NCBI GenBank assembly: GCA_950097015.1
Contig: CATNEN010000033.1
Span: forward strand, 1,922,001-1,986,000
Length of the DNA: 64,000 nt
DNA from: Macrostomum hystrix
Lineage: Eukaryota; Animalia; Platyhelminthes
Direction of reading: 5' to 3'
The translations under genes and the position numbers were made by a program. The notes beneath the pieces were generated by a model, which saw nothing but the letters and a program-made list of their open reading frames with translations, was not told the DNA's origin and made no database searches. Position 1 is the first letter of the stretch. Each line of letters begins with the position of its first letter. Positions 20,085 to 64,000 of this stretch are shown here, one piece after another.

Positions 20085-20209
20085 CTGTACTAATAATGCT
20101 CACTAAAATTTTCCGGGAAAATTGCAGACTGATAAAAAGCGTCGAAGACACGTTTTTGGAGATTAGCGAATTCGGAGAAAAACGGAAAAACGGAAATCTG
20201 TGAAAAACG

Positions 20210-27500: not shown

Positions 27501-27861
27501 ATTCGCATGATAATTTGGAGCTAGCAGCTTTTAGTTTGTGAATCTGGCGGCTTGATGAATTTCAAACTTCTTTCAGAGTCTTTCAGTGTGAAAGTGACCC
27601 GCACATTGTGCCCCTTGAGTAGTGTACATGAAGTTCGCCTGAGTCATGCAAGCACTGCTAGCCAATTGTGGGTCGACAGAACAGAGCACTGCACAATGGC
27701 AATTCGCACTCAAACAATAAAAATGACAGTCTCTATTCAAAGAGACGAGTCCAATGCCAGACCAACTCAACAGCCGGCCACACTTGGTTTTGCAAAAATC
27801 TTCTTTCGCGGCGCATCCAACAACATTCAGTGCTTCCTTTCGAATGAAATTTTGTTAGAAA

Positions 27862-30800
27862 ATGACTGCAAACAGCAGAGGCAATTTGCTTCTCCTAGTT
27901 CTGGTCCAGATTTCCAACTGCTTCTGTTGGGCAGGTAAATGTGATTAACATTCTACTGCATGCTTTTTAATCATCACTAGAAGGTGAGCTCTTTAGTTCT
28001 CGAGTGAGTTCATGAGTTAATAATTGAGTCATTGAGCTATATCTATTTCGTTTTCCAGTTTGTTTCTGTTGCAAGGCGGTTCGTAGCCTGATGATTAGAC
28101 TCAGAAGGTTGGGGGTTCGATTCCCGACTCCACTGGAACAAGTTGAGTCGTTAAGCAAGAAGCTTAACCTTTAGCAATTCACCCAGCTGTTAAATGGGTG
28201 CAAGCATTAGCTGGGGTGGGTTTGGCGTCCCCCCAGTCCATGGACTGAACAGCCGTACGCAGCCTTCAGATGCGCCGCACGATAGCTGCGACTGTGCTGT
28301 CGGCTGCACATCTGGCCCAGTTTGGGCAGGTGTGATCAATTATGATAATTATTATTTTTTTTGTAGCAGACCCTTGGCCGCCGTTCGGTTTTATGTGCAA
28401 CAGCAGTGAGACATTGCACATCATCTGGCCTGTTCGATCCAATGAAAGCAGCGGCAATGCTGGCAGAAATGCTGGATTTCGGGTCTGTCTAAGCTATTAC
28501 AACAGCTATGCCGATCACTGGCACCTCATTGTACTAACCAGCTCAACCATGGTGAGGGCTTGTTTTGTTTGCAGTTTGTCAGAGACTTGCGAGATCCCGT
28601 AAAATGATACTCGAAAAACGAGCTGCTGTAGATCTATGAGGTGGAAGCTGTAGATCAATGAGGAGGAAGCTGTAGATCTATGAGGTGGAAGCTGTAGATC
28701 AATGAGGAGGAAGCTGTAGATCAATGAGGTGGAAGTTGTAGATCAATGAGGAGGAAGCTGTAGATCTATGAGGAGGAAGCTGTAGATCAATGAGGAGGAA
28801 GCTGTAGATCTATGAGGTGGAAGCTGTAGATCAATGAGGAGGAAGCTGTAGATCAATGAGGAGGAAGCTGTAGATCAATGAGGAGGAAGCTGTAGATCTA
28901 TGAGGAGGAAGCTGTAGATCAATGAGGAGGAAGCTGTAGATAAATGAGGTGGAAGCTGTAGATCAATGAGGAGGAAGCTGTAGATCAATGAGGAGGAAGC
29001 GGTAGATCTATGAGGAGGAAGCTGTAGATAAATGAGGTGCAAGCTGTAGATCAATGAGGTGGAAGCTGTAGATCAATGAGGAGGAAGCTGTAGATCAATG
29101 AGGTGGAAGTTGTAGATCAATGAGGAGGAAGCTGTAGATCAATGAGGAGGAAGCTGTAGATCAATGAGGAGGAAGCTGTAGATCTATGAGGTGGAAGCTG
29201 TAGATCAATGAGGAGGAAGCTGTAGATCAATGAGGAGAAAGCTGTAGATCAATGAGGAGGAAGCTGTAGATCAATGAGGTGGAAGCTGTAGATCAATGAG
29301 GAGGAAGCTGTAGATCAATGAGGAGGAAGCTGTAGATCAATGAGGAGGAAGCTGTAGATCAATGAGGAGGAAGCGGTAGATCTATGAGGAGGAAGCTGTA
29401 GATCAATGAGGTGGAAGCTGTAGATCAATGAGGAGGAAGCTGTAGATCAATGAGGTGGAAGCTGTAGATCAATGAGGAGGAAGCTGTAGATCAATGAGGA
29501 GGAAGCTGTAGATCAATGAGGTGGAAGCTGTAGATCAATGAGGAGGAAGCTGTAGATCTATGAGGAGGAAGCTGTAGATCTATGAGGAGGAAGCTGTAGA
29601 TCAATGAGGAGGAAGCTGTAGATCTATGAGGAGGAAGCTGTAGATCAATGAGGAGGAAGCTGTAGATCTATGAGGAGGAAGCTGTAGATCAATGAGGAGG
29701 AAGCTGTAGATTTATGAGGAGGAAGCTGTAGATCTATGAGGAGGTCCAATTAGTTAAGAATCCACTAGAATACATTAGTGAGGTGCAACATTTCTGCTTT
29801 GCTGCTTGCTTCAAGTAACCATGCTGATACTTCAGTCTACTTTAAGTTCATTGAATGGAACGCTGCAGCATGTGGCATTCAAGATCCCGTCAGAGTACAT
29901 GCGGTGCCAGTTCTTTTACAGCTGGAAGGTTAGTCCAACTGTCGATGTACTTTTGAGTATTAGATGTACAAGGGGTGCGCTCTCTGTAACTACTGTAAAT
30001 ACCGCTTGTACTTAAATCGCAGATCCAGCCGATTACACCGAAACAAATTCCTTCTTTGCTTCGCTCACCTGCTGGTGATTCGACAGAAAACTGTGCGACT
30101 TCCACACCTGCGCAGCAGTGCGAAATCGAACGTGGGTTTGCCTTAACCTTTTATAAACTGCTGTCTAAGTACACTAATTTCCCATTTTCCTCCACAGCAT
30201 TTTCTTCTTCTTCACCACCGCATTCCCTTCTTCCTCACCGCATTCCCCTCTTCCTCACCACCGCATTCCCTTCTTCCTCGCCACCGCATTCCCTTCTTCC
30301 TCACCACCGCATTCCCTTCTTCCTCGCCACCGCATTCCCTTCTTCCTCGCCACCGCATTCCCCTCTTCCTCACTACCGCATTCCCTTCTTCCTCGCCATC
30401 GCATTCCCCTCTTCCTCACCACCGCATTCCTTTCTTCCTCGCCACCGCATTCCCCTATTCCTTACCACCGCATTCCCTTCTTCCTCGCCACCGCATTCCC
30501 CTATTCCTCACGGCATTCCCTTCTTCCTCGCCACCGCATTCCCCTATTCCTTACCACCGCATTCCCTTCTGCCTCACCACCGCATTTCCCTCTTCCTCAC
30601 CATCGCATTTCCCTCTTCCTCACCGCATTCCCTTCATCCTCGCCACCGCATTCCCCTCTTCCTCACTACCGCATTCCCTTCTTCCTCGCCATCGCATTCC
30701 CCTCTTCCTCCCCGCATTCCCTTCATCCTCGCCACCGCATTCCCCTCTTCCTCACTACCGCATTCCCTTCTTCCTCGCCATCGCATTCCCCCTCTTCCTC

Positions 30801-32564
30801 ACCACCGCATTCCCTTCTTCCTCACCACCGCATTCCCTTCTTCCTCACCACCGTATTCCGCTCTTCCTCACCACCGCATTCCCTTCTTCCTCGCCACCGC
30901 ATTCCCCTCTTCCTCACTACCGCATTCCCTTCTTCCTCGCCATCGCATTCCCCTCTTCCTCATCACCGCATTCCCTTCTTCCTCACCACCGCATTCTCTT
31001 CTTCCTCACCACCGTATTCCGCTCTTCCTCACCACCGCATTCCCTTCTTCCTCGCCACCGCATTCCCCTATTCCTCACGGCATTTCCTTCTTCCTCGCCA
31101 CCGCATTCCCCTATTCCTTACCACCGCATTCCCTTCTTCCTCGCCACCGCATTCCCCTATTCCTTACCACCGCATTCCCTTCTGCCTCACCACCGCATTT
31201 CCCTCTTCCTCACCATCGCATTTCCCTCTTCCTCACCGCATTCCCTTCATCCTCGCCACCGCATTCCCCTCTTCCTCACTACCGCATTCCCTTCTTCCTC
31301 GCCATCGCATTCCCCTCTTCCTCCCCGCATTCCCTTCATCCTCGCCACCGCATTCCCCTCTTCCTCACTACCGCATTCCCTTCTTCCTCGCCATCGCATT
31401 CCCCTCTTCCTCACCACCGCATTCCCTTCTTCCTCACCACCGCATTCCCTTCTTCCTCACCACCGTATTCCGCTCTTCCTCACCACCGCATTCCCTTCTT
31501 CCTCGCCACCGCATTCCCCTCTTCCTCACTACCGCATTCCCTTCTTCCTCGCCATCGCATTCCCCTCTTCCTCATCACCGCATTCCCTTCTTCCTCACCA
31601 CCGCATTCTCTTCTTCCTCACCACCGTATTCCGCTCTTCCTCACCACCGCATTCCCTTCTTCCTCGCCACCGCATTCCCCTATTCCTCACCACCGCATTC
31701 CCTTTTTCCTCGCCACCGCATTCCCCTATTCCTCACCACCGCATTCCCTTCTTCCTCGCCACCGCATTCCCCTCTTCCTCACTACCGCATTCCCCTATTC
31801 CTCACCACCGCATTCCCTTCTTCCTCGCCACCGCATTCCCCTCTTCCTCACTACCGCATTCCCCTATTCCTCACCACCGCATTCCCTTCTTCCTCACCAC
31901 CGTATTCCCCTCTTCCTCACCACCGCATTCCCCTCTACACCTCCTCCCGATTTGGTTCCTTGTTACGAGTACATGTTTATCCCTGCGGCTCTTTTCCCAT
32001 TCATTCCGGCCATCTTAATTCAGTCGCTACATTTTTATCCGCCTTAACCCTCCTCTGCCGAATCGGCACGCAGTGGGCAGGCACAGGGGCTGCCCAGGCT
32101 GGCGTCCATCGCAGAGCAATACCCTGGACTGCCAGCCCGACCTGTCGGATCGCTCGGCTGCCAGCTACAGCTCTCTATTTGGTCGATTGTGCCGCAGTCG
32201 CAGTGCCAGCACCGTGGCTTGGTTTGCTCCAGTCGCAGCCGTGGCAGGCTGCATTCTGATAGCAGCTGCTGGGCTAGCCCTGGCTCGCGTGTTGGCAAGG
32301 CGAGAATCGAAGCGAATCAGCAAGCGCATTGCTAATGCATCACGGCCTACTGACGCTGCTAATAGCTCAGTGACCTCGCCCGCGTCCATCTTCAACCTGC
32401 TCTCTGACGGGGCCAAACTGCGCAGAGTTGTTGAGAATTACATCTGGAGAAGTCCACAGTTCATGATGAAACCGCTGCAGCAGCGGCTGGAGCAGCAGAG
32501 AACTACAAGATTTTCTTTTTTGCTGACTAATCCTGACACGGGCGAACTCTTAATGCAAGTTTGA
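27862..32564 (+). CDS. Orphan type I membrane protein, 5 exons (27862-27934, 28367-28551, 29836-29928, 30023-30131, 32074-32564), about 316 aa
   Basis: All four introns are GT..AG with compatible phases (1,0,0,1). Signal peptide MTANSRGNLLLLVLVQISNCFCWA, Cys-containing ectodomain, TM segment AVAGCILIAAAGLALARVL, cytoplasmic tail ending ..ELLMQV. Confidence 0.7.
28075..28358 (+). mobile_element. tRNA-derived SINE, family 2 (CORE-like central domain), in intron 1 of the membrane-protein gene
   Basis: B box GGTTCGATTCC, then GCAAG..CTTAAC..CACCCAGCTGTTAAATGGG resembling the CORE-SINE domain, internal palindrome CAGTCCATGGACTG, ATT tail. Other copies at 45225, 50620 and 54064. Confidence 0.75.
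28625..29745 (+). repeat. Intronic 22-bp minisatellite (GAGGAGGAAGCTGTAGATCAAT), about 50 copies
   Basis: Directly visible tandem array inside intron 2 of the 27862-32564 gene. Confidence 0.97.
30190..31940 (+). repeat. Intronic ~23-bp pyrimidine-rich minisatellite (ACCACCGCATTCCCTTCTTCCTC) with ~610-bp higher-order repeat
   Basis: Tandem array inside intron 4. Variant CCGTATTCCGCTC recurs near 30851/31463 and 31014/31624. Confidence 0.96.
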
Positions 32565-39176: not shown

Positions 39177-42100
39177 ATGGCCATGGAAGCCTCACCTGCT
39201 GCAGCATCAAAGGCTCCCATCTTGTACCGCATTGTGCAGCCCTTCATTCCCAGCGATGAGGAAGTGGCTGCCGGCTTCATCTCTGTGCCAGAGCCTGGCG
39301 CTCAGTTAGCTTACCTAGCAACCAGTACGCTGCCCGGCACCTTCCGAGTGCAGTACCGCGATAGGGAGGGCCTCGTGCCAACCAGGTGTCTGCAACAGGT
39401 GCTGCCTCCAGCCGGCCCCGGCACCTGTAATCCCGGTAGGTGCTGAATGATCCATTCTTTGCGAGAGGCTCACGGGGACTCGTTCGTCTATCTCCTTTCC
39501 TCTTTGAAGTCTTTGTCCGTTGGTCTCCCTTCCTCTTTGAAGTCTTCGTCCGTATATCTCCCTTCCTCTTTGAGGTCCTTCTCCATCTATCTCCCTCTCT
39601 GAGGTCTTTGTCCGTCTATCTCCTTTCCTTCTTAAGGTCTTTGTTCGGCAATCTTCCTTCTTTTTGTCTTGGTTTGTGTCTTTCTCATTCTCCGCCTCTC
39701 TACTCTGTTTGAAGTCTTTCAATTTGAGTTGTCTCCCCTCCTCTAGTCATGGAAATAAAGTATATATCTAATTCTAGAATTTCGGATTAGCTTGTCGCCA
39801 AAGTATCAAAGTTCTCAGGTTATTTAAAAGTCTATGTCTATCTTCGATTCCTCCAGGCGCCCTCTCAATCGACGGTCATCAGTCAGATGTCGAAGCGGCA
39901 GCCGCAGCGGCCAGCATTCGCAGGCGGCACCAAATTTCCTCGCCACAGCCGGCCGTATTCGTGTCCGGCCCTCGTTACTGCACTCTGTGCGGCGACTACC
40001 TGTGGCACTGCCGGGCCTCCCAGTGCGCCGCCTGCAAGCGAGTTTTCCACTTGACTTGCGCCGCGGCCTCTGCCAACGGTGACAACAACGAGCAAAGCGA
40101 ATTTGACGGCTTTGACGCGCTTGCCGGCTGCGACGGCTCGGCTCCACCGTCAGACGATGCGCACTTTCTGTACCTGCACCAGGCGCCTGCGCCAATCGAG
40201 GCCTGGACCAGCCGCATGGTGCTGGAGTGGCTGTGCGCAGCCAATCTGAGCCGATTTCTTGACGTTTGCTGCAAATACCTAGGCCAGAAAGGATTTCCAG
40301 GTTTGTGGACTGCATTGAATTTCTGATCTGTTGTCAACCAGGAAATCAGAATGGGATCTGTTGTCAATCAGAATGGGATCTGTTGTCAATCAGAGTGGGA
40401 TCTGTTGTCAATCAGAGTGGGATCTGTTGTCAATCAGAATGAGATATGTTGTCACTTGTCAATCAGAGTGGGATCTGTTGTCAATCAGAGTGGGATTTGT
40501 TGTCAATCAGATTGGGATCTGTTGTAAATGAGTATGGAATCTGCAGTCAATCAGAGTGGGATCTGTTGTAAATGAGTATGGGATCTGTTGTCAATCAGAG
40601 TGGGATCTGTGGTAAATGAGTATGGAATCTGCAGTCAATCAGAGTGGGATCTGTTGTAAATGAGTATGGGATCTGTTGTCAATCAGAGTGGGATCTGTCG
40701 TAAATGAGTATGGAATCTGCAGTCAATCAGAGTGGGATCTGTTGTAAATGAGTATGGGATCTGTTGTCAATCAGAGACTCAGAGTGGGATCTGTTGTAAA
40801 TGAGTATGGGATCTGTTGCCAATCAGAGTGGGATCTGTCGAAGCGGCTGTTGTAAATGAGTATGGGATCTGTTGTCAATCAGAGTGGGATCTGTTGTAAA
40901 TGAGTATGGAATCTGCAGTCAATCAGAGTGGGATCTGTTGTAAATGAGTATGGGATCTGTTGTCAATCAGAGACTCAGAGTGGGATCTGTTGTAAATGAG
41001 TATGGGATCTGTTGTCAATCAGAGTGGGATCTGTCGAAGCGGCTGTTGTAAATGAGTATGGAATCTGCAGTCAATCAGAGTGGGATCTGTTGTAAATGAG
41101 TATGGAATCTGCAGTCAATCAGAGTGGGATCTGCTGTAAATGAGTATGGAATCTGCAGTCAATCAGGGTGGGATCTGCTGTAAATGAGTATGGAATCTGC
41201 AGTCAATCAGGGTGGGATCTGCTGTAAATGAGTATGGAATCTGCAGTCAATCAGGGTGGGATCTGCTGTAAATGAGTATGGAATCTGCAGTCAATCAGAG
41301 TGGGATCTGCTGTAAATGAGTATGGAATCTGCAGTCAATCAGAGTGGGATCTGTTGTCAATCAGAGTGGGATCTGTTGTAAATGAGTATGGAATCTGCAG
41401 TCAATCAGAGTGGGATCTGCTGTAAATGAGTATGGAATCTGCAGTCAATCAGGGTGGGATCTGCTGTAAATGAGTATGGAATCTGCAGTCAATCAGAGTG
41501 GGATCTGCTGTCGATACGACTCAGATGGGTTGCTAAGTTGGTTGAGATGATTTGACTGGCACCCAGGTGGCTCCTGTCTTCGGGGCATCACCGACCAAGT
41601 CCTGACCGATGATTGGCGGTTGAGTGACGCGCCTCACAGGTGGGCCATCAGCGAAGCTCTCAAGCAGCTCATTGATGGTGTCGAAGGCGGCAGCTTCGGT
41701 GACTGGCCGGCCTTGGACTCGGCCGCCGCCTGGCGACTCGTTCCGGAGGGCCGCGGCCGGCACCAGCTGCGGCTGTCAAGCTTTGCCGAGCATCGGACCA
41801 GCTGCTCAGCCTGCGGCCTGCGGCTGCTTGGCATCTATCAGCAGGGCCTGCAGTGCTGCCGCTGCGGCGCGATTCTGCATCGCCACTGCGCCAGATTTCA
41901 ACCTCGCCAAAAACGCGGCGAGGACGACGACTGCTGCAGGCCGGCTGTGCCAGCCGTGCTGCCGTCGATTGTATTCGGCTTGTCTATTGAAGAACAGGTA
42001 CTCTGGAAGTTTGTTCGCTATTGCTGTGGTTAGGGCTACTAGTGCTGACCCCTAACTCCAAACTCTCAGGTTGCCGCAGGTGAGCGACAGTTGCCGGACG

Positions 42101-45100
42101 AATCAGACCGGCGCAACTTGGACAACTACGCCGAGACCTACAATGTGTACGACAGTCTGGCGGCTGGCACCGCCGATTCGGCCACTGACGAGCCGACATC
42201 CCCTGAGGCTGCCAGCCACCTGGTGCCCTACATTGTGCGCCTGTGCACCTACACAGTTGAGCGGGAGAGCCTGACCAGCGTCCGCTCCCTGCTGCAGTTC
42301 TATAGGTATCGGCGCACCGCTTCTGATGTGGAAGCTCTTCGCGCCGACTTCGGCAACGGAGTCGACGCAGCTACGCGCGGCAAACTTGACGGCAAGCTGG
42401 CAGCCCAGCTGTTGAAGCTCTGGCTGCAGGAGCTGCCGACCTCACTGCTGCCCAGTCACAACTTTGACAGGTCAGTTTCACCTTGGGTGGGATTTTGAGA
42501 CTATTCGGGTCACTTTCTAGCCTTAGATGTTGAAACTAAGGCGTCACCTTCTGGCACAGGACATTGAGGCTAATGACTGGCTTTCTATTCCAGGATGTTG
42601 AGGTCAACATTTGGCTTTCTATTCCAGGATGTTGAGGTCAACATTTGGCTTTCTATTCCAGGATGTTGAGGCCAATTATTGAGGTTTCGAGTCTCTATTA
42701 TGATTGAGATTTTAAAGTGTGGCAGATAGGAACAATCAAAGACGGTGATTAAAGCATTTTATTCCTTAACTAATCTGGCCTCAGATTCGTTCGCGTGATG
42801 GACCTGCCGGCCAGACAGCTGCCTCAGCAGGCCATCGAGTTCCGCCGCCTCCTAGCCGAAGCGCCTGTGCATCACCGGGCCACCCTGCAGCACCTGATGT
42901 GCCACTTTGTCCAACTGTTTCGCAAGGTACGCGCGCCAGATCCGCAGCAATTCATCGCCTGGTCTCGAGTGTTTGGCCAGCTGCTGCTGCGGCCAACCTG
43001 GTCCCGAGTAACCGGACTTGTGGCCGGGGACCACGCCAGGCCCTGCGTTGTGCCGCTGCACGATGTGGCCAAAGGCGTGCTGTCACACGGCCGCTGGGGC
43101 TGCGTGCTGCCCTCCTTTCTGAGGCTCAGCGATCCGTCTCAGGTGAGATTGCACTGGATTGTAGATTGTGCTCCAGAGATGCCCAGAATTCACCGCTAAC
43201 ATTGATCCACAGTGATCGAAAGATGCCCAGAATTCTAAAAAATCGATTGGCTAACCTTCCCAGATCCTCAAAGTCGACGGCTAACCATCCCAGATCCCCA
43301 AAGTCGACGGCTAACCTTCCCAGATCCTCAAAGTCGACGGTTAACCTACCCAGATCCTAAAAGTCGATGGCTAACCTTCCCAGATCCTCAAAGTCGACGG
43401 CAAACCTTCCCAGATCCTCGAAACTCACTGCTAACGTTTTCAGATCCCAGAATTCGACTGCCAACCTTCCCAGATACTAAAATTCGACTGCCAACCTTCC
43501 CAGATCCCCAAAATTCGACTGCCAACCTTCCCAGATCCCCAAAATGTGCTTGCAACCTTCCCAGATCCCCAAAATGTACTTGCAACCTTCACAGATCCCC
43601 AAAATCTAATGCCTACATTCTCAGATCCTCAGAGCCAACGGCCAACCAGGTCCCAAGAACAAAATGATTACACTTGACGCCAACTCTTGTACCCGTGGAA
43701 TGTCCCGCAGGTTGACCACATTTCGATGTCCGAACAGCCCTGGTACTGGGGCGACATCTCCAAGTCGGAGGTGCAGGCGGTGCTGGCCAATCGGCCGGAC
43801 GGCTCATTCCTGGTGCGCAACGCGGCTAATATGAGCGGCGGCTACACCCTGACGCTGAAGAAGGACGGCGAGAACAAGCTGATCCGCATTTATCCGCGCT
43901 ACAAAACCAACAACAGGCTGACCTACGGCTTCTCGGAGCGGGCTACTGAGTTTTTCACGGTGGCCCAGGTGATCAATTACTACACTTACAAGTCGCTGAG
44001 AGAGTACAACGAGAATCTGGACGTGCTGCTACTCTATCCGATTAGCAAATTCGCCGGCGGGCCAGAGATTTCCTCCGCCGCGCCGCAAGGAAATGCCGAA
44101 GAGGTTCGTCTAGACGTCCTTGTTGTCTGTGCTTCTTGTTTATTACGCAGTGATTGGCCTAATATTTAAAAGTTTGAGATGACCCGCTGATGGCCACGTG
44201 GAGAGTTTGAGATGACCCGCTGATGGTCATATGGATAGAGTTTGAGATGACCCGCTGATGGTCATATGGATAGAGTTTGAGATGACCCGCTGATGGTCAT
44301 ATGATAGAGTTTGAGATGACCCGCTGATGGTCATATGGATAGAGTTTGAGATGATCCGCTGATGGTCATATGGATAGAGTTTGAGATGATCCGCTGATGG
44401 TCATATGGATAGAGTTTGAGATGACCCGCTGATGGTCATATGGATAGAGTTTGAGATGACCCGTTGATGGTCAAATGGATAGAGTTTGAGATGATCCGTT
44501 GATGGTCATATGGATAGAGTTTGAGATGACCCGTTGATGGTCATATGGATAGAGTTTGAGATGACCCGCTGATGGTCATATGGATAGAGTTTGAGATGAC
44601 CCGTTGATGGTCATATGGATAGAGTTTGAGATGAACCTGCTGGGGAACCCCACTAATCCATCCTGTCTGACTCTTACCCGCCGCGGCATTTTTGCAGGCA
44701 CGCCAGGAACTGCTCACACTCTACCAGGAAATGGGCCGAGAAATCTCTGAGTCCATGGTGAAGATGGATGAGCATGCTGCCACGATTTCGACTCTGAAAG
44801 ATCAGCAGCTGGAGGCTGAGCGCGGCTCCAAGTGCTACTCTCAGGTTGTTCTCACCCTGTCTAACAACATTGTCAAGATGGACGGGCTAATTGATCGTGG
44901 GACCGCGGTTGAGGACCAGATGAGAACCAATCGAAGTCTGCAGGTGAGAGAGGCGAGAAATTCGCTTTTGTCGCTTCGACCGAATCTTCCCATTTTCATC
45001 AATTGCAGCACAATCAAAATGCAGCCAGCGGGGAGGCAATTCTGCCCTATTCCGCTGAGCACACACGCACATGGGCATGTTGCATAGTCACTGACACAGG

Positions 45101-46133
45101 TGTACATCTGCCCTAGCTTTCCCATCGTCAGGCAGTGTACACTCACTGCGTCATGAGGCTTGACGATATGCGTGTTCTCTCCTCCCCTCTCGCCATCTCT
45201 CAGCGGCTGCAAATCAAATCAACCCCGTGTACAGTTTTTCAGTCCATGGACTGGGGGCGGCATACCCACACGAATTGCTAACCCAGCTAATGCTAGTAAC
45301 CATGTTACAATTAAACAATGAACTGAAGCAATGATGCAGATTGTTTAGCGTTTGAGCTGAGATTCGAACTCTGAACCTTATCACTGAGCATTCCTAATCC
45401 TGATTATTTTCCTCTCTAACGGGAAAATCTCCCCAACCCGCCGCTCGCAACGCAGGAGAACCGGCTGCAGATGTACCGCTCCCGTCAGGAGGCGGCCGAG
45501 AAGGAGGCGCAGCGGATCCGGCACGACAGCCAGGTGTTGCAGGCGGAGGTGCGCACAATGCGAGCCGACGTCCGGGCCATCCAGGAGAAGCGCATCCGCC
45601 TGAAGGCCATCCTAATGACCCTCTACGGTGTGTCCCGCGAGACCATTGACGCTGAGGACGGCGCCATCCCGGGCGCGAACTTCTCCAGCTACCGGGCGGA
45701 CAGCATCGAGCAGCTCTCCCTGGCCGAAGACCTAACGGCGCCTCCGCAGGCCTCGCCGTGGGATCCGGCCGACTGGCTGGACCGGCAGATCACCAAGGCC
45801 GACCCGCTGCTCCGCCGGCTGGACCCGGCCCCAATCGGCACCTTCCTGATTCACGCGTCCCGCTCCGGCGGCCAGGAGAGTCTAGTACTGTCCGTGCGCA
45901 GTCCGTGCGGAGTTCGATTCTGCAAGATCTTCATGGAGCTGGGCCAGGGCCAGCAGCAGACTGGTCGCTGCGGCTTCGATTCGACAAATCCAACTGCCTT
46001 TTCTAGCCTGGAGAGTCTGGTCGCTTATTATCGAATGAATTCACTTGGCAAACACAATCGCGACATGGACACCTGCCTGTTCCTGCCCCTGAAACAACTG
46101 CCGCCCGACCGAGGCACCGACATCTACATCTGA
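39177..46133 (+). CDS. PIK3R1: PI3K regulatory subunit p85-like: SH3-C1-SAM-C1-RhoGAP-nSH2-iSH2-cSH2, 8 exons (39177-39435, 39857-40300, 41567-41997, 42070-42470, 42785-43142, 43711-44103, 44698-44943, 45456-46133), about 1069 aa
   Basis: nSH2 QPWYWGDISKSEV..DGSFLVRNA..YTLTLKKDGENKLIRI is typical of p85. RhoGAP KLWLQELP, two Cys/His C1 patterns, SAM WTSRMVLEWL. All splice phases are compatible and the total of 3210 nt is in frame. The start codon is tentative. Confidence 0.88.
39483..39720 (+). repeat. Intronic degenerate 33-bp minisatellite (p85 intron 1)
   Basis: CGTCTATCTCCTTTCCTCTTTGAAGTCTTTGTC-like units at 39485, 39518, 39551 and onward. Confidence 0.85.
40325..41510 (+). repeat. Intronic 22-bp minisatellite maturing into 44-bp dimers (p85 intron 2)
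   Basis: AATCAGAGTGGGATCTGTTGTC alternating with AAATGAGTATGGAATCTGCAGTC. Confidence 0.96.
42579..42675 (+). repeat. Intronic 34-bp repeat, about 3 copies (p85 intron 4)
   Basis: GGCTTTCTATTCCAGGATGTTGAGGTCAACATTT at 42579, 42613 and 42647. Confidence 0.9.
43245..43650 (+). repeat. Intronic 30/31-bp minisatellite (p85 intron 5)
   Basis: CCAGATCCTCAAAGTCGACGGCTAACCTTC units. Confidence 0.93.
44170..44635 (+). repeat. Intronic 35-bp minisatellite (p85 intron 6)
   Basis: GAGTTTGAGATGACCCGCTGATGGTCATATGGATA, about 13 copies. Confidence 0.95.
45020..45390 (-). mobile_element. Adjacent partial SINE family 1 (about 45020-45145) and family 2 (about 45225-45390) in p85 intron 7
   Basis: GAGGCAATTCTGCCC..CACAGGTGTACATCTGCCC (family 1) and CAGTCCATGGACTGGGG..CCCAGCTAATGCT (family 2). 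Confidence 0.75.
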
Positions 46134-48768: not shown

Positions 48769-50351
48769 ATGTCCAGCAGCCGCGTTCGTAAAGCATCCGA
48801 GTCACCGGTGGAGAATGGCATCGCCGTGTCGCCAGGCGTGCCCTGCTGTCTGCACGCTGAGCCCGACCCCAGTAAGCCCGGCCACGCGCTCAATGGTTGC
48901 CTAGACCCTGGCGACCTGATGATTGATCCGGATGAGCCCGGGGACGCCGTCAAGCTGGTGTGCTCCAGCCCGCACTGCTGTCACAGTAAGCATACCGAAC
49001 GAATTCCCGAGTGGAACAAAATCCTTAAAAGTATTTTACATGCTGTTTTTCTCCCTGGAGAAAGACCATAGGGTGCATTTCAAATACCCACTGCTTCACT
49101 GCTGCTCCCAAACCGAATGACCGATTTTCGTGAAAGTGCACCATATGAATCTAAATTTCCCGCCCGTTTTCTGGATTTGCATGGCGACTGGCTGAATATT
49201 TTAGGAGATACAGAAAAAAATTGGTACTTTAAATACCCCCTGGTCTTTCTACTTTTGAGTAAGAAGTGGCAATCGGATCCGCAACCCCGCGCCAATTAGG
49301 CTTGTGGGCCCACGCCGACTGCTTCAGCCGCTGGGAGCGGGTCCTGCTCTCTGCCGCCAAGCTCCGCGCACCCGGCGTTCTGGGCAAGATCCGCTGTCCC
49401 TGCGGCCGCGGCCAGATCAGCCGGGACACCCGGCAGTCTCCGCCGCAGCTCATCGCGGCCGGGGTGCGCAAGCGCCAGACCAACGGCCTGCAGGTGGCCG
49501 GCGGCTCCTCCTACAGCCCCACCGACATTCTTAGCCGGCGCTTCCGCCACCTCAGCAACTCATCGAATCAGAGCGGCAACTTCAGCTTGAGCCCGCCGCA
49601 GACCGACGGCGGCTGTGGCCCCTCGCTTCCCTTCTCATCGCCCGCCTACGCCGCCTCCGCCGCCGCCACAGTGTTCGCCCCTTCGCCCGGCTCTGGTTAC
49701 AATCGCGGCAACATCTTTCGCCGGCGTAGCGACAACTACGAGAGCCTCAAAGCTCTGCCGCGCTGGAAGCAAAACAAATTCCACATTGTCACCGAGGACG
49801 ACAGCTCGACGGAGAATGACGACTTAAAGTCGCTGGTGCTGACCACCCTGACTGCCTGCCGCTGTCCCGATGTGCCCTGCGTCCTCTGCTCCCGCTGGAT
49901 GCCCGTCTACGACCACTTCCCGCTGGTTGACGGCACCTTCTTTCTCAGCCCGCTCCGGCACACCCCGGAGAGTCCGGCCTGCGGCAAGGGCTTCCTTCAC
50001 GCCGTCTGCATGCACTGCGCCTGCGTGTCCACCCTGCACAGCCGCTGCCGCTTCTGCCAGCGAGTCTGGGACGGCTCCCACCTGCTCATTGGCGGGGTCT
50101 ACCTGTTCGATGTGTTCGCCTGCTGCCCGTGCTGTCCGGACCGCCTGACCTGCGCCAACTGTCGAAGGCCGGCTGTGAAGGACACCGCCGAGCTGCCCAG
50201 TGCCTTCTCTCACTTCAGCCAGCCGGCCGCCTGCGCGCACTGCAGGGCGCAGGACTTCCACTTTGTGAAGCCGGCGCAGCACATTTTCAGGCAGGTGGGC
50301 GGGGCGGCGGCTGCTGCTGCAAGCACCGGGGCTGGCCCAGCGTCCTTCTAG
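48769..50351 (+). CDS. HECA: Headcase protein homolog, 2 exons (48769-48985, 49300-50351), about 422 aa
   Basis: DAVKLVCSSPHC, HADCFSRWE, CPCGRG, CVLC..VYDHFPLVDGTFFLSP, HAVCMHC, WDGSHLLIGGVYLFDVFA..CC, DFHFVK. Phase-1 intron A|GTAAGC..ATTAG|GC. Confidence 0.9.
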
Positions 50352-52032: not shown

Positions 52033-52270
52033 ACCAAGTCGTTCACGCACCAATTAGACAACAATTGGCTGGAAATTATTCTCAATGGACGCTAATTGGC
52101 TGGAAATTAACAAACTGGCGTACATTGACTTATTCTCACTCGATGCTAATTGGCTGGAAATTAACAAACTGGCGTACATTGACTTATTCTCACTCGACGC
52201 TAATTGGCTCGAAATTAACAAACTGGCTTACATTGACTTATTCTCACTCGACGCTAATTGGCTGCTAATT
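52033..52270 (+). repeat. 54-bp tandem repeat, 3-4 copies, each with TAATTGGCT
   Basis: GCTAATTGGC at 52091, 52145, 52199 and 52253. Confidence 0.9.
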
Positions 52271-52384
52271 TAATTAAGAGTGCAGTCTATATAATATTAT
52301 GCGATTGTACATCCTAAAACCAGTATTATTGGCTGCTATAAATTCCAGAATCCAGACGCACAATCCTATGTTGTGGGCTCATTG

Positions 52385-55194
52385 TCAGTAGGGTCGAACA
52401 AACTCCGGCAATCCGACAAGCCTATCCAGGACTTCCACCCGGGAGCCGGTCAGCAACTGGTAGCCGTCGCCGTCCCACCGCGGCAGCAGCACAACGAGGC
52501 CGTCGAAGCCGTGGCTGGGCACGGCGAAGCGAACTGGCCTGCCCCAGCCGAAGTCGGCCTCGTAGATGGGAAAGTGCACCCAGGATGTGAAGGCCAGATC
52601 GTTGGAGAACATGCGGAAGTCGGGCAAAACTCTTGACCGATCTGGCCTGGAGGCCAGCCACCGCAGGATGGAGCGCAGATACTCCGGCGCCGAGCCTCTG
52701 GACACCGAAGCCCGCACTCGGCGAGCCAGCGCCGCCAGGCTCAGACTGTCGACTATCTCGCCGACCGCCAGCTGTTCGGCGATGTAAAAATTGGCATTGC
52801 CGGCGAAGTCGGCTGGCAGTGACAGGCGTTGTCGAGCGTTGCAGGCCATGGCGAACTTGCTGGGGGTCTCCGCTGGGAGCTGCTTGGCCTTGGTGAAGCA
52901 GCGCCATAGCAAGGCCACCAGGCAGTCGTTTGTGGTGCATTGAACTGCGGTCTGCTGAAGGGCGGTTGCAGGACGGGGGTTTAGGGCACAGTTATTCAGA
53001 ACAATTGTCAGTGTCCTTGGAAGCGCGGGCTTGTAGCCCAGTGGTCTAGACTTCTGACCGAGAGGTCGGGAGCTCAAATCTCGGCCCAGTGGTGACAATG
53101 TGTGTCCCTGTACAAGAGACTATTATACCCTATAAGTACTTCAGGACTTGCTGGGTTAGAAATTTCGGTCAGTGTGGCGGCCTGCTTAGTCCACGGACTT
53201 TGTCCACTTCCAAAGGCTAGCCGTATGCAGATGTGCCACTGGCGGTATCTATGGCTTCTTTCTATCTACCAATATAACATTTTTTGCAGGAGGGCTGAGG
53301 GCACTGGCGCATCATTTGGTGATAATGGACCCGCAGCTAATGAGGAGGCAATTCTGCCCATTCCGCTGACTCCTGACTGCTAAGCACACACGCACACAGA
53401 TCTGTACGCAGGCATTCGCTCACACAGGTGTGTACATCTGCTCTGCTCACATCGTCAGGCAGTGCACACTCTGATGGACTCTGATGGACATCAATATCGC
53501 CTTTAGGGTGGGCCATAAAGGGCGTAAATTGTACGACAAACCACCAAGTTTTCTCTCCGCGGCTGCGCCACACATGTGGCCCCATCGCGGAATCGAGCTC
53601 AGGGACCTACCCGCCCGGCGCCGTCCGCATTGACGCCGGCCTTCAACTTGGCCAGGAAATCAGCGCTCAGGTGAAACTGTCGGGCCGCAAACTGCGGCGC
53701 CTGCGTGATGGGCAGCTTGGATTCTTGCTGATTGTCGCTAGCTGCCTTCGGAGGCTCCGGTTCCATATAGGCGTACTCCAGGCCCTGATGGTCCCAACTC
53801 GGCTCTCGCCCGTCGGAACTGAGCAGCGACCGGTCACGGGCCACAGGTGGCGGCGTCGGCGAATTTCTTTGCCGAATGCCGCGGCAGATGGCGGCCCACC
53901 GGTTGACGAAGCCGAATGCTCCGTCGCCATCGGTGACATTGTGGTGCAGGAGAACCCCAACAGCCACTGAGCCATCAGACAAACGAGTGAGCTTGACCTG
54001 TCAATTGAGTCATTCCTGTTTGTAAGTTTCACAACTGTTACGAAAGATATATATATAAAAGTTAATAATAATAATAAAACTAATTGATTACACCTGCCCC
54101 AATTGGGCCAGATGTGCAGCCGATAGAACAGCCGCAGCTATTGCGTGGCGCATCTCAAGTCTGTGTACAGCTTTTCAGTCCATGGACTGGGGGGACGCCA
54201 CACCCACTCTCAATTACCCCAGCTAATGCTGGTACCCATTTAACAGCTGGGTGAACTGAAGCAATGCAGAGTTAAGTGTCTTGCTTGTTAAATGGACACA
54301 CTGGACACAAATTGTTCCAGCGGAGTCAGGAATCGAACCCACGGCCTTCAAGTCATGAGTCCGACAAGAGTCCAACCTCTGTTGATAACACTTGTTAATC
54401 TCAGATTTTCAAGTCGTCTTTGGCAATTTGTACTTGCTCTGTTTGCCAACATGTCCCATCACCAACTTGGTCAAATCCCAACCATGTCGACATCATGAGC
54501 CCCTCGTCATTGCCACTTCCCATTTACTCTCGCCTTCGCCATTCTCCTCACTCTCGCCTTCGCCATTCTCCTCCCTCTCGCCTTCGCCATTCTCCTCACT
54601 CTCGCCTTCGCCATTCTCCTCACTCTCGCCTTCGCCATTCTCCTCACTCTCGCCTTCGCCATTCTCCTCACTCTCGCCTTCGCCATTATCCTTACTCTCG
54701 CTATCGCCATTCTCCTCTCTCTCCCCGTCGCCATCCGCAACTTCCTTCGCCACCCGAGAAGCCAGCCCCCCTCTCCGCACCTTGCAGACGAACTGGCCGC
54801 AATCGGCCGGGCTGCCGTCGAGCAGCTCAGCCGGCAGCCGCATGGGATCGAAGTCCGCCGCCTCCAAGTCGGCCAATGAGAAATCGGCGCTGGCTGTCAC
54901 GAAGCGGTAGCCGGCGTTCTCAGCCACCAGGACGCAGTCGCCAGAGTGGTTGCGCCGCAGCCGGTAGCTTAGGTCGGGAAAGTCGCTCATCGCCCGCTTC
55001 AGGCCGTCAGCCAGCAGGTCAAACGGCATGAAGTCTTCGCTGCCGTCGGCATTCTTGAACACGTAGACAGCGGTGATGTAGCAGGCTGGCATGACTGAGT
55101 CGATGGGCGAAAGCTGGATCTCCGGCGGGTCGACTGCCGACCACTTCGACAGGTCTGGGTGCACAATGTCCGCTGTCTCATCAGTGACAAGCAT
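52385..55194 (-). CDS. BAHD-family (Transferase, PF02458-type) acyl-CoA-dependent acyltransferase, 3 exons (55194-54781, 53997-53611, 52954/52951-52385), about 456 aa
   Basis: LSPIDSVMP..Y, L..GLKRAMSDFPDL, VKLTRLSDGSVAVGVLLHHNVTDG (HxxxD), FHLSADFLAKLK, TTNDCLVALLWRC, NARQRL..FAGNA, FTSW..DFGWGRP. Both introns are GT..AG, phase 0, and the spliced frame is intact. Confidence 0.9.
53330..53597 (-). mobile_element. SINE family 1, 3'-truncated diverged copy in BAHD intron 2
   Basis: GAGGAGGCAATTCTGCCCATTCCGCTGACTCC..CTCTCCGCGGCTGCGCC..GGAATCGAGC matches family 1. Confidence 0.82.
54064..54380 (-). mobile_element. SINE family 2 (CORE-like) in BAHD intron 1
   Basis: On the minus strand: GGGTTCGATTCC B box, GCAAGACACTTAACTCTGCATTGCTTCAGTTCACCCAGCTGTTAAATGGGTACC, ATT tail. 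Confidence 0.82.
54519..54720 (+). repeat. Intronic 24-bp minisatellite (CTCGCCTTCGCCATTCTCCTCACT), about 8 copies, in BAHD intron 1
   Basis: Tandem array starting about 60 bp after the exon-1 donor at 54780. Confidence 0.93.
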
Positions 55195-55473
55195 GGCAGC
55201 TGCAGTAAGTCGAATAGAAATATTCGAATAGCTGCTGATGCCTGGCGAGTCTTCCATGTGTAATTTGTAAGCAATAATTAAAGCAAAATATTTTCCTATA
55301 TTTCCTATTTATTCATATTTCCTATTTTCCTATTTTCCTATTTATAATTTATTAGTAAATAAAACGCCTTACAAAAATACTTCATAAGAAAAAATTAATT
55401 TGCAAACTGAAATTTGACAGTTTTCTGATGGTTTAAACTAGTTTAATTAATTTTTTGTTGTTAATATACAAAA

Positions 55474-57892
55474 CTAGCTTTTTTTGCCCGTTGTTTTTGG
55501 GGCAGAAATTTAAAGCAAAGCAGTAAGCAATTCACGTCTCTGTATTAACTTTATAGTGAAGGTCACCATTTATTTATTTACTGCATGAATGAAAAGTGAA
55601 GAGTTTGTTTAAGGGCGTACTGGCTCTGACAGCCAGTCAACGTCAGCATATCGAACCATCAGGTTCGGGTAAACTTTTGCCTTGAGCTCCTGCACTGACT
55701 GCACAATGGTTCCGATTGTAGCGATCGATGACTGCCCATTCTCTGTGCTAATCTCCAGCAGACCATTGCCGATTCGCAATAGATTGGCAGAGAACTCATG
55801 AGCTGTTTCGTCTCCTTGAATTGTAGCTCTCATGTTTGTTCGTAGGTGCAACTTCACAACCGATGGCCACAGGTGAGATGATTTTAGGAAAGCATTAATC
55901 TCATCAGCAGGAGTGCCTCGCGGAATCACAGGCAGCGTCTGTCTAAAGTCTCCAGACAGCAGCAGAGTGACACCACCCATCAGTTGATTGCTATTGCGCA
56001 GGTCTTTCAAAGTTAAGTTGAGTGCTTCAAATGCCAGTTTGTGGGACATGGTACACTCATCCCAGACGATAAGCTTGCAAGCCTGAAGCACTCTGGCAGT
56101 GCCTGTGTTTTTCTTGATGTTGCACAGCGGATTCTCCGCTCAAGACAGATCAAGCGGCAACTTCAGTGCTGAGTGGGCAGTGCGACCGCCTGGCAGCAAG
56201 GTGGCTGTAATTCCAGAGGAAGCTACAGCAATGGCAACGTCGCCTCGTTGCCTGACCTTTGCCAGAAGGAGGTTGATTAGAAATTTTTTTCCTGTGCCAC
56301 CTGGAGCATCAAGGAAAACCATGCCACCAACGTTGTTGTTGACTCTGCGCAATAGCTCGCGGTACGCCTCTAGCTGCTCAGGCATGAGTCGGGGCTCATT
56401 CTCCTCTATGAACTGTCCCAGCTGCTCCTGGTCATCCAGCTCTTCCAGCAGTCCCAGTCGCTGACATGCTTCATGAAAAGTTTGGCAGGTATGGCCTTCC
56501 ACCGTTCTAATGTGTCTAAATGACGTCGGACCAATCACGGTGTGTAGCAGGTAGTAGCATTCACTGTGGTTTGGGTGCACCGTGTACTCTGGCTAATGCA
56601 TCAGTCTGTCGTATTTCAGGATGGCCTGGAACTGCAGCGCCTTGAACCCGCCGCTTCCATCCTTTCGAAGAGGCGTTCCATGTGTAATAGGCAGGCACCT
56701 GGTGGTACAGCAAAGTCCTGGCAAAGGGGTCTTCAGCGCACAACTTGAAGAAAGCAGTAAGAGTAGTGTCCTGTGGCCTTTGAGCACGCTGCTGGATGTT
56801 CTCCTCCGTAAAGTATACTCTCTGACCGTTTTCCAAGTGCACACTGAGGTGCATGACAGTTGGGTGGCGTTCATGAATAGAGAATCCGAAGATTCGCCAC
56901 ATTGCCTCGTTAGAGCTGATACCTTCCGCTCTTGAAGCGATTGACTTCGTCAAATTCGTTTACTATGCCTCCAGGTCCCTCAATGTTGAACACTGCTTGG
57001 TCGCTACCCTTGTTCACGTACTTGCAAATGTACTTGATTGATTTAACAGAGTTGCAGTACTCAACGTTGATGTGTGGATTGAACACCTTGGACAGTAGCG
57101 GGCAGTAGGGAACGACCCATCTGTTGTCCAGATCGATCTCTTCATTCCCATGGCTGCATAGAATAATGCGAGTGGTAAAGCCGCCATCCTCTCGTGATCT
57201 CCGTCGATACAGCGGATAACCGTCTTGTATTTTAGCAAAGCACTGTACGCCAGCCTCTCTCTTTCTTCTATCCCAGGCTGGCTGGAGAGAAATATTGACC
57301 GGAGAGCCCTGCGCACTGGGACGCCACCGCACTCACCACACTCAGTCTCAGTGCTGCTTGGGGGCCAGTAGACAATCTAGGGGTTTGGGCTGTGTACATT
57401 CACGGCTTGAAATGCAATGTACAGTCTGGGGCTTCGGCGCCCGGGGAAGGGAGGGGGTGGCTGTATTAAAATTTGGCCCGCAGAGTGGCGGAGGGGAGTT
57501 GGGGTGGCTGTCCTCGGAAAACAAAAAGTGACTCACTTTGAGATGATGCAGCTTTGCTCTGGATTGAGTAGAGATGTTCAAAATTGACAGCATTGTTGGA
57601 AAACATGTAAAGTGTAAGTGGATCAAATTTGGAGAAAATCTGACAAAGTGGGGCGACGATATGTCGAATTGAGTGATTTTTTGACGATTTTTGAGCAGTT
57701 TTTTGCACTTTTGAGCAGGAAGGAAATGATTTTTCGGGAATTTGAGTAGCCTATTGCACTCAGCGTAGGTGGTTTTAGGTATGTGCAAAGTTTGGTGCGA
57801 TTTGGTTGAGCGGTTTCGGCGTCTATAAAGACAAAAGGTTGCACACAGACAGACAGACAGACAGACAGAGTTTTCACTTTTATATATATAGA
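55474..57892 (-). mobile_element. Helitron derivative B: both termini plus frameshifted Rep motif 3 and the N-terminal part of the PIF1-like helicase
   Basis: 5' end TCTATATATATAAAAAGTG..(TGTC)n at 57892 and 3' end ..CAACGGGC..GCTAG|T at 55474. GYPLYRRR, NRWVVPY, HINVE, SIKYICKYVNKG, EAMWRIFGF, LDAPGGTGK, GGRTAHS, IVWDE, GDFRQTLPV. Confidence 0.92.
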
Positions 57893-59644
57893 CTAGCTTT
57901 TTTGCCCGTTGTTTTTGGGGCAGAAATTTAAAGCAAAGCAGCAAGCAATTCACGTCTCTGTATTAACTTTATAGTAAAGGTCACCATTTATTTATTTACT
58001 GCATTAATGAAAAGTGAAGAGTTTGTTTAAGGGCGTTTTAAGTAAAAAAATAAGTGAAAAGTTTGTCCAAACAGCCCCCTCTTGATTACTTCTTTAGAAA
58101 CATGTCTCTTAGCCACTCCTCTATACAGTCAGTGGCAGATCCAGGAATTTTGTTTTGGGGCAGTCTGTCAGGGGAGCGCCATGAGAATCACAGAGGGGGT
58201 GCCAGCAGCCGAAAAAGGGCGCCAGGAGCCAAGAAAGGCGCCAGCGGCTGAAAAACGGGAGCCAGCGGCTGAAAAAGGGGCGCCAGCGGCCGAAAAGGGG
58301 CGCAAGTGCTGCGACTGGCGCCCCTGGTGGGGGCATCTTATTCCCATGATTAAAATTTAGGGGGGCGACTGCCCCCCCCGCCCCCCCCTAAATCTGCCTC
58401 TGTATACAGTATGCATGTGCACGCGTATACATAAGGAAAATAGCCATGGCACAACAATAACAATGTCAAAGAAACAAAATTAAACTGTTTCAGAGTTCAG
58501 AGTTAGACAGGTCAAGGTCAATTCGTGACTACTTTTCTATTAATTGCTTGCGAGTCACCTCAAGGCCTGGGGATACACCACATTCTTCGTTCTTCCCCTT
58601 GGTGCGAAAATGAATAGGCCAGCTGGAGTTCCAACACGGGAGCAGGCGACATAAAGCTGCCCATGCGAGAAGCAAGGAGTCTCCAGGTTGATGCCAGCCA
58701 CCTTCAGCGACTGTCCCTGAGCCTTGTTAATAGTCATCGCAAAGCACACTCTCACAGGGAACTGCAGTCGCTTGAACTGAAATGGCAGGTCCGTGGGGAT
58801 AATTGGAATCCGGGGAACGAACACAGACTCTCCTCTGCCAGATCCAGTCATTATCGTGGCCTCAATCACGTGTGGGAAGAGCCGCCTGACTATCAGTCTG
58901 GTGCCGTTACACAGCCTTGGCGCATTCAGGTTGCGGAGGAGCATAATTGGTGCCCCAACTTTCAGCTGCAAGTTGTGCGATGGAGTTCCAGGAGGATCTA
59001 GAGAGTTCAGAAACTCAACAGGATACTCCACAGCGGTGTCATCAGTCAACGTTGTATCAATTGACTTGTAGGTGAAAACTGCACCTGGCAACTCCTGAAG
59101 CAGTTGGTAGTTAATTTCGTTGGCGGCATCATTTCTAGGACACAGAATTGCCCTCTCTGACAGCCAGTCAACGTCAGCATATCGAACCATCAGGTTCGGG
59201 TAAACTTTTGCCTTGAGCTCCTGCACTGACTGCACAATGTTTCCGATTGTAGCGATCGATGACTGCCCATCCTCGGTGTTAATCTCCAGCAGACCATTGC
59301 CGATTCGCAATAGATTGGCAGAGAACTCATGAGCTGTTTCGTCTCCTTGAATTGTAGCTCTCATGTTTGTTCGTAGGTGCAACTTCACAACCGATGGCCA
59401 CAGGTGAGATGATTTTAGGCAAGCATTAATCTCATCAGCAGGAGTGCCACGCGGAATCACAGGCAGCGTCTGTCTAAAGTCTCCAGACAGCAGCAGAGTG
59501 ACACCGCCCATCAGTTGATCGCCAGCCTCTCTCTTTCTTCTATCCCAGGCTGGCTGGAGAGAAATATCAACCGGAGAGCCCTGCGCACTGGGACGCCACC
59601 GCACTCACCGCACTCAGTCTCAGTGCTGTTTGGGGGCCAGTAGA
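57893..59644 (-). mobile_element. Helitron derivative A: C-terminal half of the helicase and 3' terminus, 5' terminus not seen
   Basis: GDFRQTLPV, AILCPRND, LCNGTRL, FPVRVCFAMTINKAQGQSL, FSHGQLYVACSRV. Its 3' block is nearly identical to 55474-55615 and ends in CTAG at 57893. Confidence 0.92.
58130..58402. mobile_element. hAT-type MITE inserted in the Helitron A 3' UTR
   Basis: Imperfect TIRs CAGTGGCAGAT / ATCTGCCTCTG, 8-bp TSD TATACAGT (58122-58129 and 58403-58410), internal GGCGCCAGCGGCTGAAAAA-like repeats. Confidence 0.85.
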
Positions 59645-63144: not shown

Positions 63145-64000
63145 CGTAGGGTGTCCCAGAATTAGCGGGAAAAATCGATGCACAGGCAAACTGGTGCAAC
63201 ATAGTTTATTGAAACTTACGTCACTGATATATAAACATTCAGCAGTTCTAATGCTTTTTAAATCAAGTAAATATGTCAACTCATTAAAAAGTTTTAGCTA
63301 AAATTAGAACAAGGGGTAAGGGGTAGAGTTACACCAAGTCAAGGCCAGCGGAATCGGTCACGCAGCATCGCCATTGCTGACCTACTTCTTTGACTTAGCG
63401 GCAGGGAGCCTCCATGACAGACGCAGCGAGGAGGCGGCCGGTGCCGCCCATATCGCTAACCCCTGGCAGCATCGCCATCGCCGTCGACTGACGACTTTTC
63501 GACGAAGTCCCCCTTAGCTCGCAGCACTTAGTCCATCGCGTGAGAAGCGCATTGATGGCATCTGCATAAGCTCGACGCGGAATTTCGTGCAGCAGAACCC
63601 GCCTGAATTCACCTTCCAAGTTGTCGCGATGGTCAAAGATGCGCCCCCGCAGGTGCTTCTTTAACTGAGGGAAAATTGCGTAGTCGCAAGGAGCTAAGTC
63701 TGGTGAGTAGGGTGGGTGCGCAAGCAGATCAAAATTGAGTTCGTTGATACGATCAAGCGTTTTCTTGGCCGTGTGAGGTCGAGCGTTGTCGTGCAACAGG
63801 AGGTGAGGCTTCATCGCAGCCCTGCGCTTGTTGCGGATGTCTGATTTCATCTTAGTCAGCGTCTCCGTGTACCGGTCCGAGTTAACCGTGCTGTTAGGCC
63901 CAAGGAAGTCGATGGTCAGGGTTAGACCCAGAAGGGTCAGGTCAACCTTCTTGATCGAAGAAAAGGGTCAGCATGATCTTCTTGCAGTGCTGGTCTCGCT
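63145..64000 (-). mobile_element. Mariner (DD34D) transposon, 3' part with decayed transposase, continuing beyond the window
   Basis: TVNSDRY, LLHDNARPH, HPPYSPDLAPCD with exactly 34 residues between D2 and D3. TIR-like end TA-GGGTGTCCCAGAATTAGC near 63147. Confidence 0.9.

Follow-up and report, generated by a model that had tools for sequence, protein, structure and literature searches.

A spliced and conserved BAHD acyltransferase gene in the flatworm Macrostomum hystrix, likely acquired from a non-animal eukaryote

We analysed a stretch of 64,000 nt from the genome of Macrostomum hystrix (contig CATNEN010000033.1, positions 1,922,001 to 1,986,000; hereafter the window, whose own coordinates are used throughout). 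An initial annotation of these letters had reported an intact acyltransferase gene of the BAHD family, with both catalytic signatures, HxxxD and DFGWG, and had named a non-animal host as a finding that would overturn its reading; the host is a macrostomid flatworm. The coding sequence (CDS) of the gene spans 52385-55194 on the minus strand and is divided into three exons, which give a spliced CDS of 1371 nt and, by translation, a protein of 456 amino acids (aa) with one terminal stop. This spliced reading frame, the match of its product to the family profile PF02458 and the mapping of both motifs confirmed that the gene is intact. Its parts are as follows.

54781-55194, minus strand: exon 1, aa 1-138, with the ATG at 55194 and a GT donor
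53998-54780, minus strand: intron 1, 783 nt, phase 0, GT..AG, skipped in the contigs of runs X4 and X5
53611-53997, minus strand: exon 2, aa 139-267, carrying HxxxD
53929-53943, minus strand: HNVTD (HxxxD), aa 157-161, located by motif mapping within HHNVTDG (aa 156-162)
52955-53610, minus strand: intron 2, 656 nt, phase 0, GT..AG with a tandem CAGCAG acceptor, skipped in X4 and X5
52385-52954, minus strand: exon 3, aa 268-456, carrying DFGWG, with the stop codon at 52387-52385
52541-52555, minus strand: DFGWG, aa 401-405, located by motif mapping
52234-52384, minus strand: 3' untranslated region, about 151 nt, delimited by the end of the spliced contig
52274-52269, minus strand: ATTAAA signal, 35 nt upstream of the end of the transcript contig

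Transcript evidence came from Logan contigs of public runs, for which no library type is recorded. Of the words sampled from the 2810-nt stretch between start and stop codon, about 0.46 were present in four runs (X4-X7, all from one 2020 study), a value near the exon fraction of this stretch (0.49). The expression check proposed by the initial annotation gave a positive answer, with one 1551-nt contig in each of X4 and X5 that runs across all three exons and has its joints at the predicted GT-AG sites. Its pieces correspond to 52234-52954, 53611-53995 and 54779-55200. The joints leave out 656 and 783 nt, and in both runs the skipped stretches are bounded by CT..AC on the plus strand, which reads GT..AG on the strand of the gene. 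When the spliced contig was placed on 52200-55400, it differed from the window by five mismatches in total. A joined form of the gene, free of introns, therefore exists, and mRNA is the best reading of it.

At its 5' end, the transcript contig carried 23 unaligned letters that lie directly 5' of an AG at 55201-55200, and a CAG acceptor-like site was observed 6 nt before the ATG (55195-55201, minus strand). The same start-codon context was found in Macrostomum lignano. Trans-splicing of a spliced leader is frequent among Macrostomum genes (PMC10468722), and the 23 letters may, at a guess, belong to such a leader.

Around the ends of the gene, two further structures were observed. A mechanical open reading frame (ORF) of 254 aa (54493-55257, minus strand) begins at an upstream in-frame ATG (55257) and keeps the frame of exon 1 open through the donor into a 24-bp minisatellite, read-through of which would give GEGESEEN-type repeats; the minisatellite is missing from the spliced contig, which uses neither of the two extensions. 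Moreover, a 54-bp tandem repeat (52076-52264; 3.5 copies, 94% matches) overlaps about 30 nt of the 3' end of the transcript.

Each of the three exons matched PF02458 on its own above the gathering score (cut-off 22.7 bits). Exon 1 scored 49.1 bits (E 4e-13; profile positions 3-111), exon 2 scored 36.8 bits (E 2e-9; positions 136-212) and exon 3 scored 80.5 bits (E 1e-22; positions 250-416), such that together they tile positions 3-416 of the 434 in the profile. In a family alignment of 30 rows, H157 and D161 were nearly invariant (at least 90%), as were G405 and G407 of the M. lignano ortholog. The DFGWG motif of the worm aligned with that of the hydroxycinnamoyl-CoA:shikimate/quinate transferases (HCTs), and plant HCTs were the best PDB matches by sequence, with an E-value of 1e-22 for exon 3 alone.

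For the fold, an AlphaFold2 model of the M. lignano ortholog, which is 73-75% identical to the M. hystrix protein, was used as a proxy, and the three exons of the window were included in the alignment. The model was obtained with a predicted local distance difference test score (pLDDT) of 91.4 and a predicted template modelling score (pTM) of 0.90. Its best fold matches in the PDB were HCTs (template modelling score (TM) 0.81/0.85, E 1e-35). Next came the hydroxycinnamoyl transferases of agmatine and spermidine, COSY and TRI101, and BAHD-family structures made up all of the top 50 matches. The two-domain, chloramphenicol-acetyltransferase-like fold is thus predicted by way of the ortholog.

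Among the known enzymes, one of the closest comparisons is with HCT (BAHD clade V; 4KE4, 5FAL, 5KJT), which shares with the worm protein PF02458, HxxxD and DFGWG, as well as the Thr and Trp of a 'TSW' segment preceding DFGWG that are conserved relative to sorghum HCT, and which ranked first in the PDB by both sequence and fold (TM 0.8-0.85). In contrast, the worm protein is only 24-28% identical to HCT, is encoded in an animal, and is not nested among the plant sequences. In addition, position 371 of the 4KE4 chain aligned with a Pro at residue 111 of exon 3 (phmmer alignment). This position, R371 of SbHCT (by our own count in the alignment) and R356 of AtHCT, is what we take to be the arginine 'handle' for the carboxylate of shikimate or quinate; since it is a proline in the worm, the enzyme is not expected to be a shikimate ester synthase. 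Judged by its sequence, the protein looks like a catalytically competent BAHD enzyme on the HCT-like side of the family, with an acceptor that is probably not shikimate-like. The fungal trichothecene 3-O-acetyltransferase TRI101 (2RKV, 3B2S, 2ZBA) shares superfamily and fold with it (E 2e-10 for exon 3, TM about 0.77), but is much more distant from the worm protein than HCT-like proteins are, and the TRI-like_N profile PF22664 did not match the window protein.

The best protein match of the gene product was A0A1I8JM83 / PAA49264.1 of M. lignano (79% identity on exon 3), one of the M. lignano proteins that UniProt names automatically as merely 'Transferase'. On the M. lignano contig NIVC01000280.1, the BAHD gene, Headcase and a 1089-aa C1/RhoGAP/SH2 gene were found in the same order and orientation as in the window. 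The position of intron 1 is identical in the two species, and that of intron 2 lies one codon away in M. lignano, at the place where the window has the tandem CAGCAG acceptor. The M. lignano gene has one additional intron, which is absent from M. hystrix, so that an intron was either gained or lost during the evolution of the genus.

11332-11446 of the M. lignano locus (L004, on NIVC01000280.1): third intron of the ortholog, 115 nt, phase 2, between FINR and W

In a codon alignment of the two species, the nonsynonymous rate (dN) was 0.175 and the synonymous rate (dS) 1.07, which is near saturation, with a dN/dS of 0.16. M. hystrix and M. lignano each represent one of the genus's two main clades. 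Based on the shared introns, the synteny and the dN/dS, the gene is older than the split between the two species, and purifying selection has acted on it from then on; it is old, integrated and selected. A genome duplication is known in M. lignano (PMC10468722), and the several BAHD copies of that species fit this duplication rather than an expansion of the family.

To place the gene in its host context, we list here its neighbours and the repeats of its introns.

49266-50351, plus strand: Headcase (HECA), PF16002 (E 1.8e-57), downstream of the BAHD gene and convergent with it
about 41620-46133, plus strand: C1-RhoGAP-SH2-SH2 (p85-like) gene, with C1_1, RhoGAP and two SH2 domains on successive ORFs
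55609-56091 and 58555-59604, minus strand: PIF1-like helicase fragments (PF05970, PF21530), directly upstream of the BAHD gene
54085-54365: dispersed repeat in intron 1, resembling a short interspersed nuclear element (SINE), about 281 bp, for which the genome yields at least 4,306 first-look candidates
54526-54734: 24-bp minisatellite in intron 1, 8.7 copies, 93% matches (Tandem Repeats Finder)
53020-53300: dispersed host repeat in intron 2, with 30 further matches in the genome (69-95% identity, many contigs)

The genome searched comprised 220,453,370 bases in 42 contigs. A single PF02458 locus was found in these 220 Mb, about 1.97 Mb into its contig, and the paralog count suggested by the initial annotation is thus one. 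Forty copies of the intron 1 repeat were scored, and the 39 that lay outside the query's own place were 88-89% identical and distributed over many contigs; this repeat also had a very high contig depth in RNA-type runs. ARAGORN detected no transfer RNA (tRNA) gene in the introns, for which Rfam gave only a sub-threshold microRNA match, and because no tRNA head was detected, the label 'SINE' rests on copy number and dispersal. The GC content at third codon positions (GC3) was 0.775 in the BAHD CDS, compared with 0.78-0.85 in the neighbouring host genes, and the introns have about 50% GC. The PIF1-like fragments are probably Helitron remnants. On these points the initial annotation stood: splice joints and repeat searches agree with two spliceosomal introns that hold host repeats and a minisatellite, and the domain matches (PF16002; C1, RhoGAP and SH2) agree with HECA and p85 as neighbours.

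Other features of the window were observed in passing. In the p85-like neighbour, a C1 domain precedes the RhoGAP and the two SH2 domains, which is unusual for such an architecture, and it is present in M. lignano as well. The region 20000-28000 (plus strand) has a GC skew of +0.63 to +0.68 and repeated, overlapping ORFs of about 189-234 aa with a spacing of about 2,987 bp, and looks like a large tandem array. A 663-aa mechanical ORF at 30056-32047 (plus strand) occupies a 2-kb block with a GC skew of -0.73 and an AT skew of -0.40, which is probably low-complexity or repeat sequence. Finally, dehydrogenase exons and a DDE_3 transposase fragment were found at 2554-3252 (minus strand), 10253-10822 (plus strand) and 63395-63850 (minus strand), the dehydrogenases being a 3-hydroxyacyl-CoA dehydrogenase and a lactate/malate dehydrogenase.

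The BAHD family is typical of plants, fungi and amoebae, and drives much of the specialised metabolism of plants and fungi. Homologs outside Macrostomum were sought by a phmmer search of exon 3 against 1.84 billion representative sequences, from sources that include NCBI, UniRef and EukProt. The search listed 150 matches; records were looked up for 30 of them, including all of the top 19, and the other 120 are unlabelled. M. lignano came first (E 2e-99), then Basidiobolus meristosporus (E 2.9e-36, 44% identity on exon 3), and the next matches were Turnera (a plant), Phalansterium (Amoebozoa), Riccia (a liverwort) and environmental sequences. Besides M. lignano, none of the 30 looked-up matches was recorded as animal, and about half were unnamed environmental sequences derived from metagenomes or the SRA. 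The named ones included the fungi Basidiobolus and Dentiscutata, the Amoebozoa Ceratiomyxa, Physarum, Phalansterium and Balamuthia, the oomycete Phytophthora, the holozoan protist Pigoraptor, and plants. Some environmental matches were found in a eukaryotic context, with a dynein heavy chain beside P0017 and a homeodomain beside P0008; another, P0009, lay on a compact, gene-dense contig.

Outside Macrostomum, the closest proteins over the full length were those of Basidiobolus: the 'transferase' ORX94943.1 of B. meristosporus (36%, E 1e-80) and its B. ranarum homolog (32%), both of a length similar to that of the worm protein. Riccia (32%), Pigoraptor (31%) and Rhizophagus (30%) were somewhat less similar to the worm protein than B. 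meristosporus was. Unlike the worm gene, that of Basidiobolus is intronless, and the DFGWG motif, canonical in Macrostomum, is DFGYG in Basidiobolus, Rhizophagus and the environmental sequence P0013.

Word-index searches with the M. lignano ortholog, exon 3 and the Basidiobolus protein gave 4, 3 and 10 matches, respectively, among them Martensiomyces (Kickxellomycotina), and no further animals or closer relatives, with an index too insensitive for the PF02458 family, the first search having missed even Basidiobolus. In bacterial and archaeal genomes, 65 pattern matches were obtained and none was confirmed by tblastn, which speaks only weakly against a bacterial donor.

In quick maximum-likelihood trees, the two Macrostomum sequences were sister to Basidiobolus, with a Shimodaira-Hasegawa-like approximate likelihood ratio (SH-aLRT) support of 84 and then 95. 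More careful searches were run under LG+G4 and under the LG+C20 mixture, to which B. ranarum and Rhizophagus were added. In the C20 tree, Macrostomum fell outside a clade of plants, Pigoraptor, Balamuthia and Phytophthora (98/93). As far as the sequences go, the trees place Macrostomum among microbial eukaryotes and not inside the land plants, and single out no donor. The phylogeny called for in the initial annotation was thus informative in part: Macrostomum was never nested in plants and stood among microbial eukaryotes, but no supported donor clade emerged.

We consider it likely that the gene entered an early Macrostomum ancestor by horizontal transfer from a non-animal eukaryote, and a foreign origin is what we infer from the distribution of its homologs. 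In this scenario, the ancestor of the genus would have acquired the gene from an early-diverging fungus or an amoebozoan-like microbe; the acquired gene would then have gained spliceosomal introns and the codon usage of the host, and purifying selection would have retained it. The transfer proposed by the initial annotation is the best explanation, with no animal other than M. lignano among the 30 labelled matches, but it is unproven.

Several observations weigh against it. The sister relation to Basidiobolus dissolved under both LG+G4 and LG+C20, where a long branch of about 1.2 changes per site set Macrostomum apart, within a polytomy that also comprised Basidiobolus, Glomeromycota, Ceratiomyxa plus Physarum, and a TRI-like clade that is probably fungal. 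Basidiobolus was also the best labelled match of most of the unlabelled environmental sequences, and its closeness may therefore be a short-branch effect. Moreover, approximately unbiased (AU) tests under LG+G4 rejected neither a grouping of Macrostomum with Pigoraptor (delta lnL 27.9, p 0.215) nor one with plants (delta lnL 21.2, p 0.263), and the trees, taken by themselves, are compatible with vertical descent. The absence from other animals is a statement about protein databases and 30 labelled matches, with animal genomes and the transcriptomes of other flatworms not searched, and the predicted fold is that of the M. lignano ortholog rather than of the window protein.

The alternative that survives best, although we regard it as unlikely, is ancient vertical inheritance, in which an old eukaryotic family was kept in Macrostomum and lost in the other sampled animals. 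The presence of homologs in Amoebozoa, several early-diverging fungal phyla, the holozoan Pigoraptor and Phytophthora would be expected if this were so, as would the native look of the gene (introns, host-like GC3, conserved synteny) and the survival of the grouping with Pigoraptor in the AU test. However, it would require many independent losses in animals (an estimate, not a count), against one gain in the Macrostomum stem. The losses would span other rhabditophoran flatworms, other spiralian phyla, ecdysozoans and deuterostomes, as well as cnidarians, placozoans, sponges, ctenophores and probably choanoflagellates, and Macrostomum is the only animal among the labelled matches. The C20 tree also bars Macrostomum from the clade that holds Pigoraptor and the plants, and the Pigoraptor sequence is itself of unsure origin, coming, as we understand it, from the transcriptome of a predator grown with its prey.

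Capture of a BAHD gene from a land plant, after the manner of whitefly BtPMaT1, appears very improbable. Plant HCTs are the best relatives of known structure, but the content of the PDB is biased towards plants, and the arginine handle of HCT is a proline in the worm. The position of Macrostomum as sister to the sampled plant clade survived the AU test; nevertheless, in no tree was it nested inside the plants, the C20 tree excluded it from their clade, and the identity to plant proteins (32%) was below that to Basidiobolus (36%). The one well-known precedent for this family in animals is that of whiteflies, which carry the plant-derived phenolic glucoside malonyltransferases BtPMaT1 and BtPMaT2 (Xia et al. 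2021, as cited in PMC9599486). These resemble the worm gene as BAHD enzymes that are resident, expressed and conserved in an animal genome. In contrast to the plant-acquired whitefly genes, that of the worm is more fungus- or amoeba-like, was acquired before the lineages of M. hystrix and M. lignano parted (dS about 1) and is found in a free-living flatworm rather than a herbivorous insect. The comparison drawn in the initial annotation thus holds for the family, the integration and the expression, and not for a placement within land-plant BAHDs or for the age of the gene, which makes it a loose analogy.

Contamination or an assembly artefact, with the gene coming from a fungus or protist of the culture, has only the non-animal affinity of the protein in its favour and was rejected, its chance being close to nil, in agreement with the initial annotation, which had argued against contamination, since the locus lies deep in its contig between Headcase and the Helitron remnants, the introns hold host repeats with thousands of copies, the GC3 is host-like, and the three-gene neighbourhood is repeated in the independent assembly of M. 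lignano.

For the enzyme that horizontal transfer would have brought into the genus, the predicted activity is an acyl-CoA-dependent transfer to an O or N atom of a small molecule. His157 of the HxxxD motif would act as general base in moving the acyl group from an acyl-CoA thioester to the hydroxyl or amine of a small acceptor, as plant HCT-like enzymes do. The N-terminus has no obvious signal peptide on inspection, which fits a cytosolic location. Detoxification of dietary phenolics is a conjectural role; it and the synthesis of endogenous esters or amides are both possible, and neither is favoured. At long odds, one could speculate that the enzyme belongs to a small acquired pathway making N-acylated polyamines (for example acyl-cadaverine or phenolamide-like compounds). 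Chemistry of this kind is known elsewhere in plants and fungi, whose HCT-like BAHD enzymes acting on agmatine and spermidine rank among its nearest relatives in structure.

Our literature search found no paper on flatworm BAHD genes, on relevant horizontal gene transfer in Macrostomum or on the locus Mlig030323, and the main text of a 2026 compendium of metazoan horizontal gene transfer mentions neither Macrostomum nor flatworms nor BAHD. In the literature found, whiteflies are the only animals reported to have BAHD genes, which were taken from plants (PMC9599486). A horizontally acquired animal BAHD gene is therefore known in kind, and the Macrostomum gene itself was found in no paper. If the proposed origin is true, animals have recruited BAHD enzymes more than once, the flatworm case, in a genus that serves as a laboratory model, being independent of that of whiteflies, much older and non-plant-like, and the few transfers on record from eukaryotes to animals gain a well-documented example. 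RNA interference and transgenesis exist for M. lignano, and would make the role of this BAHD enzyme in the worm directly testable.

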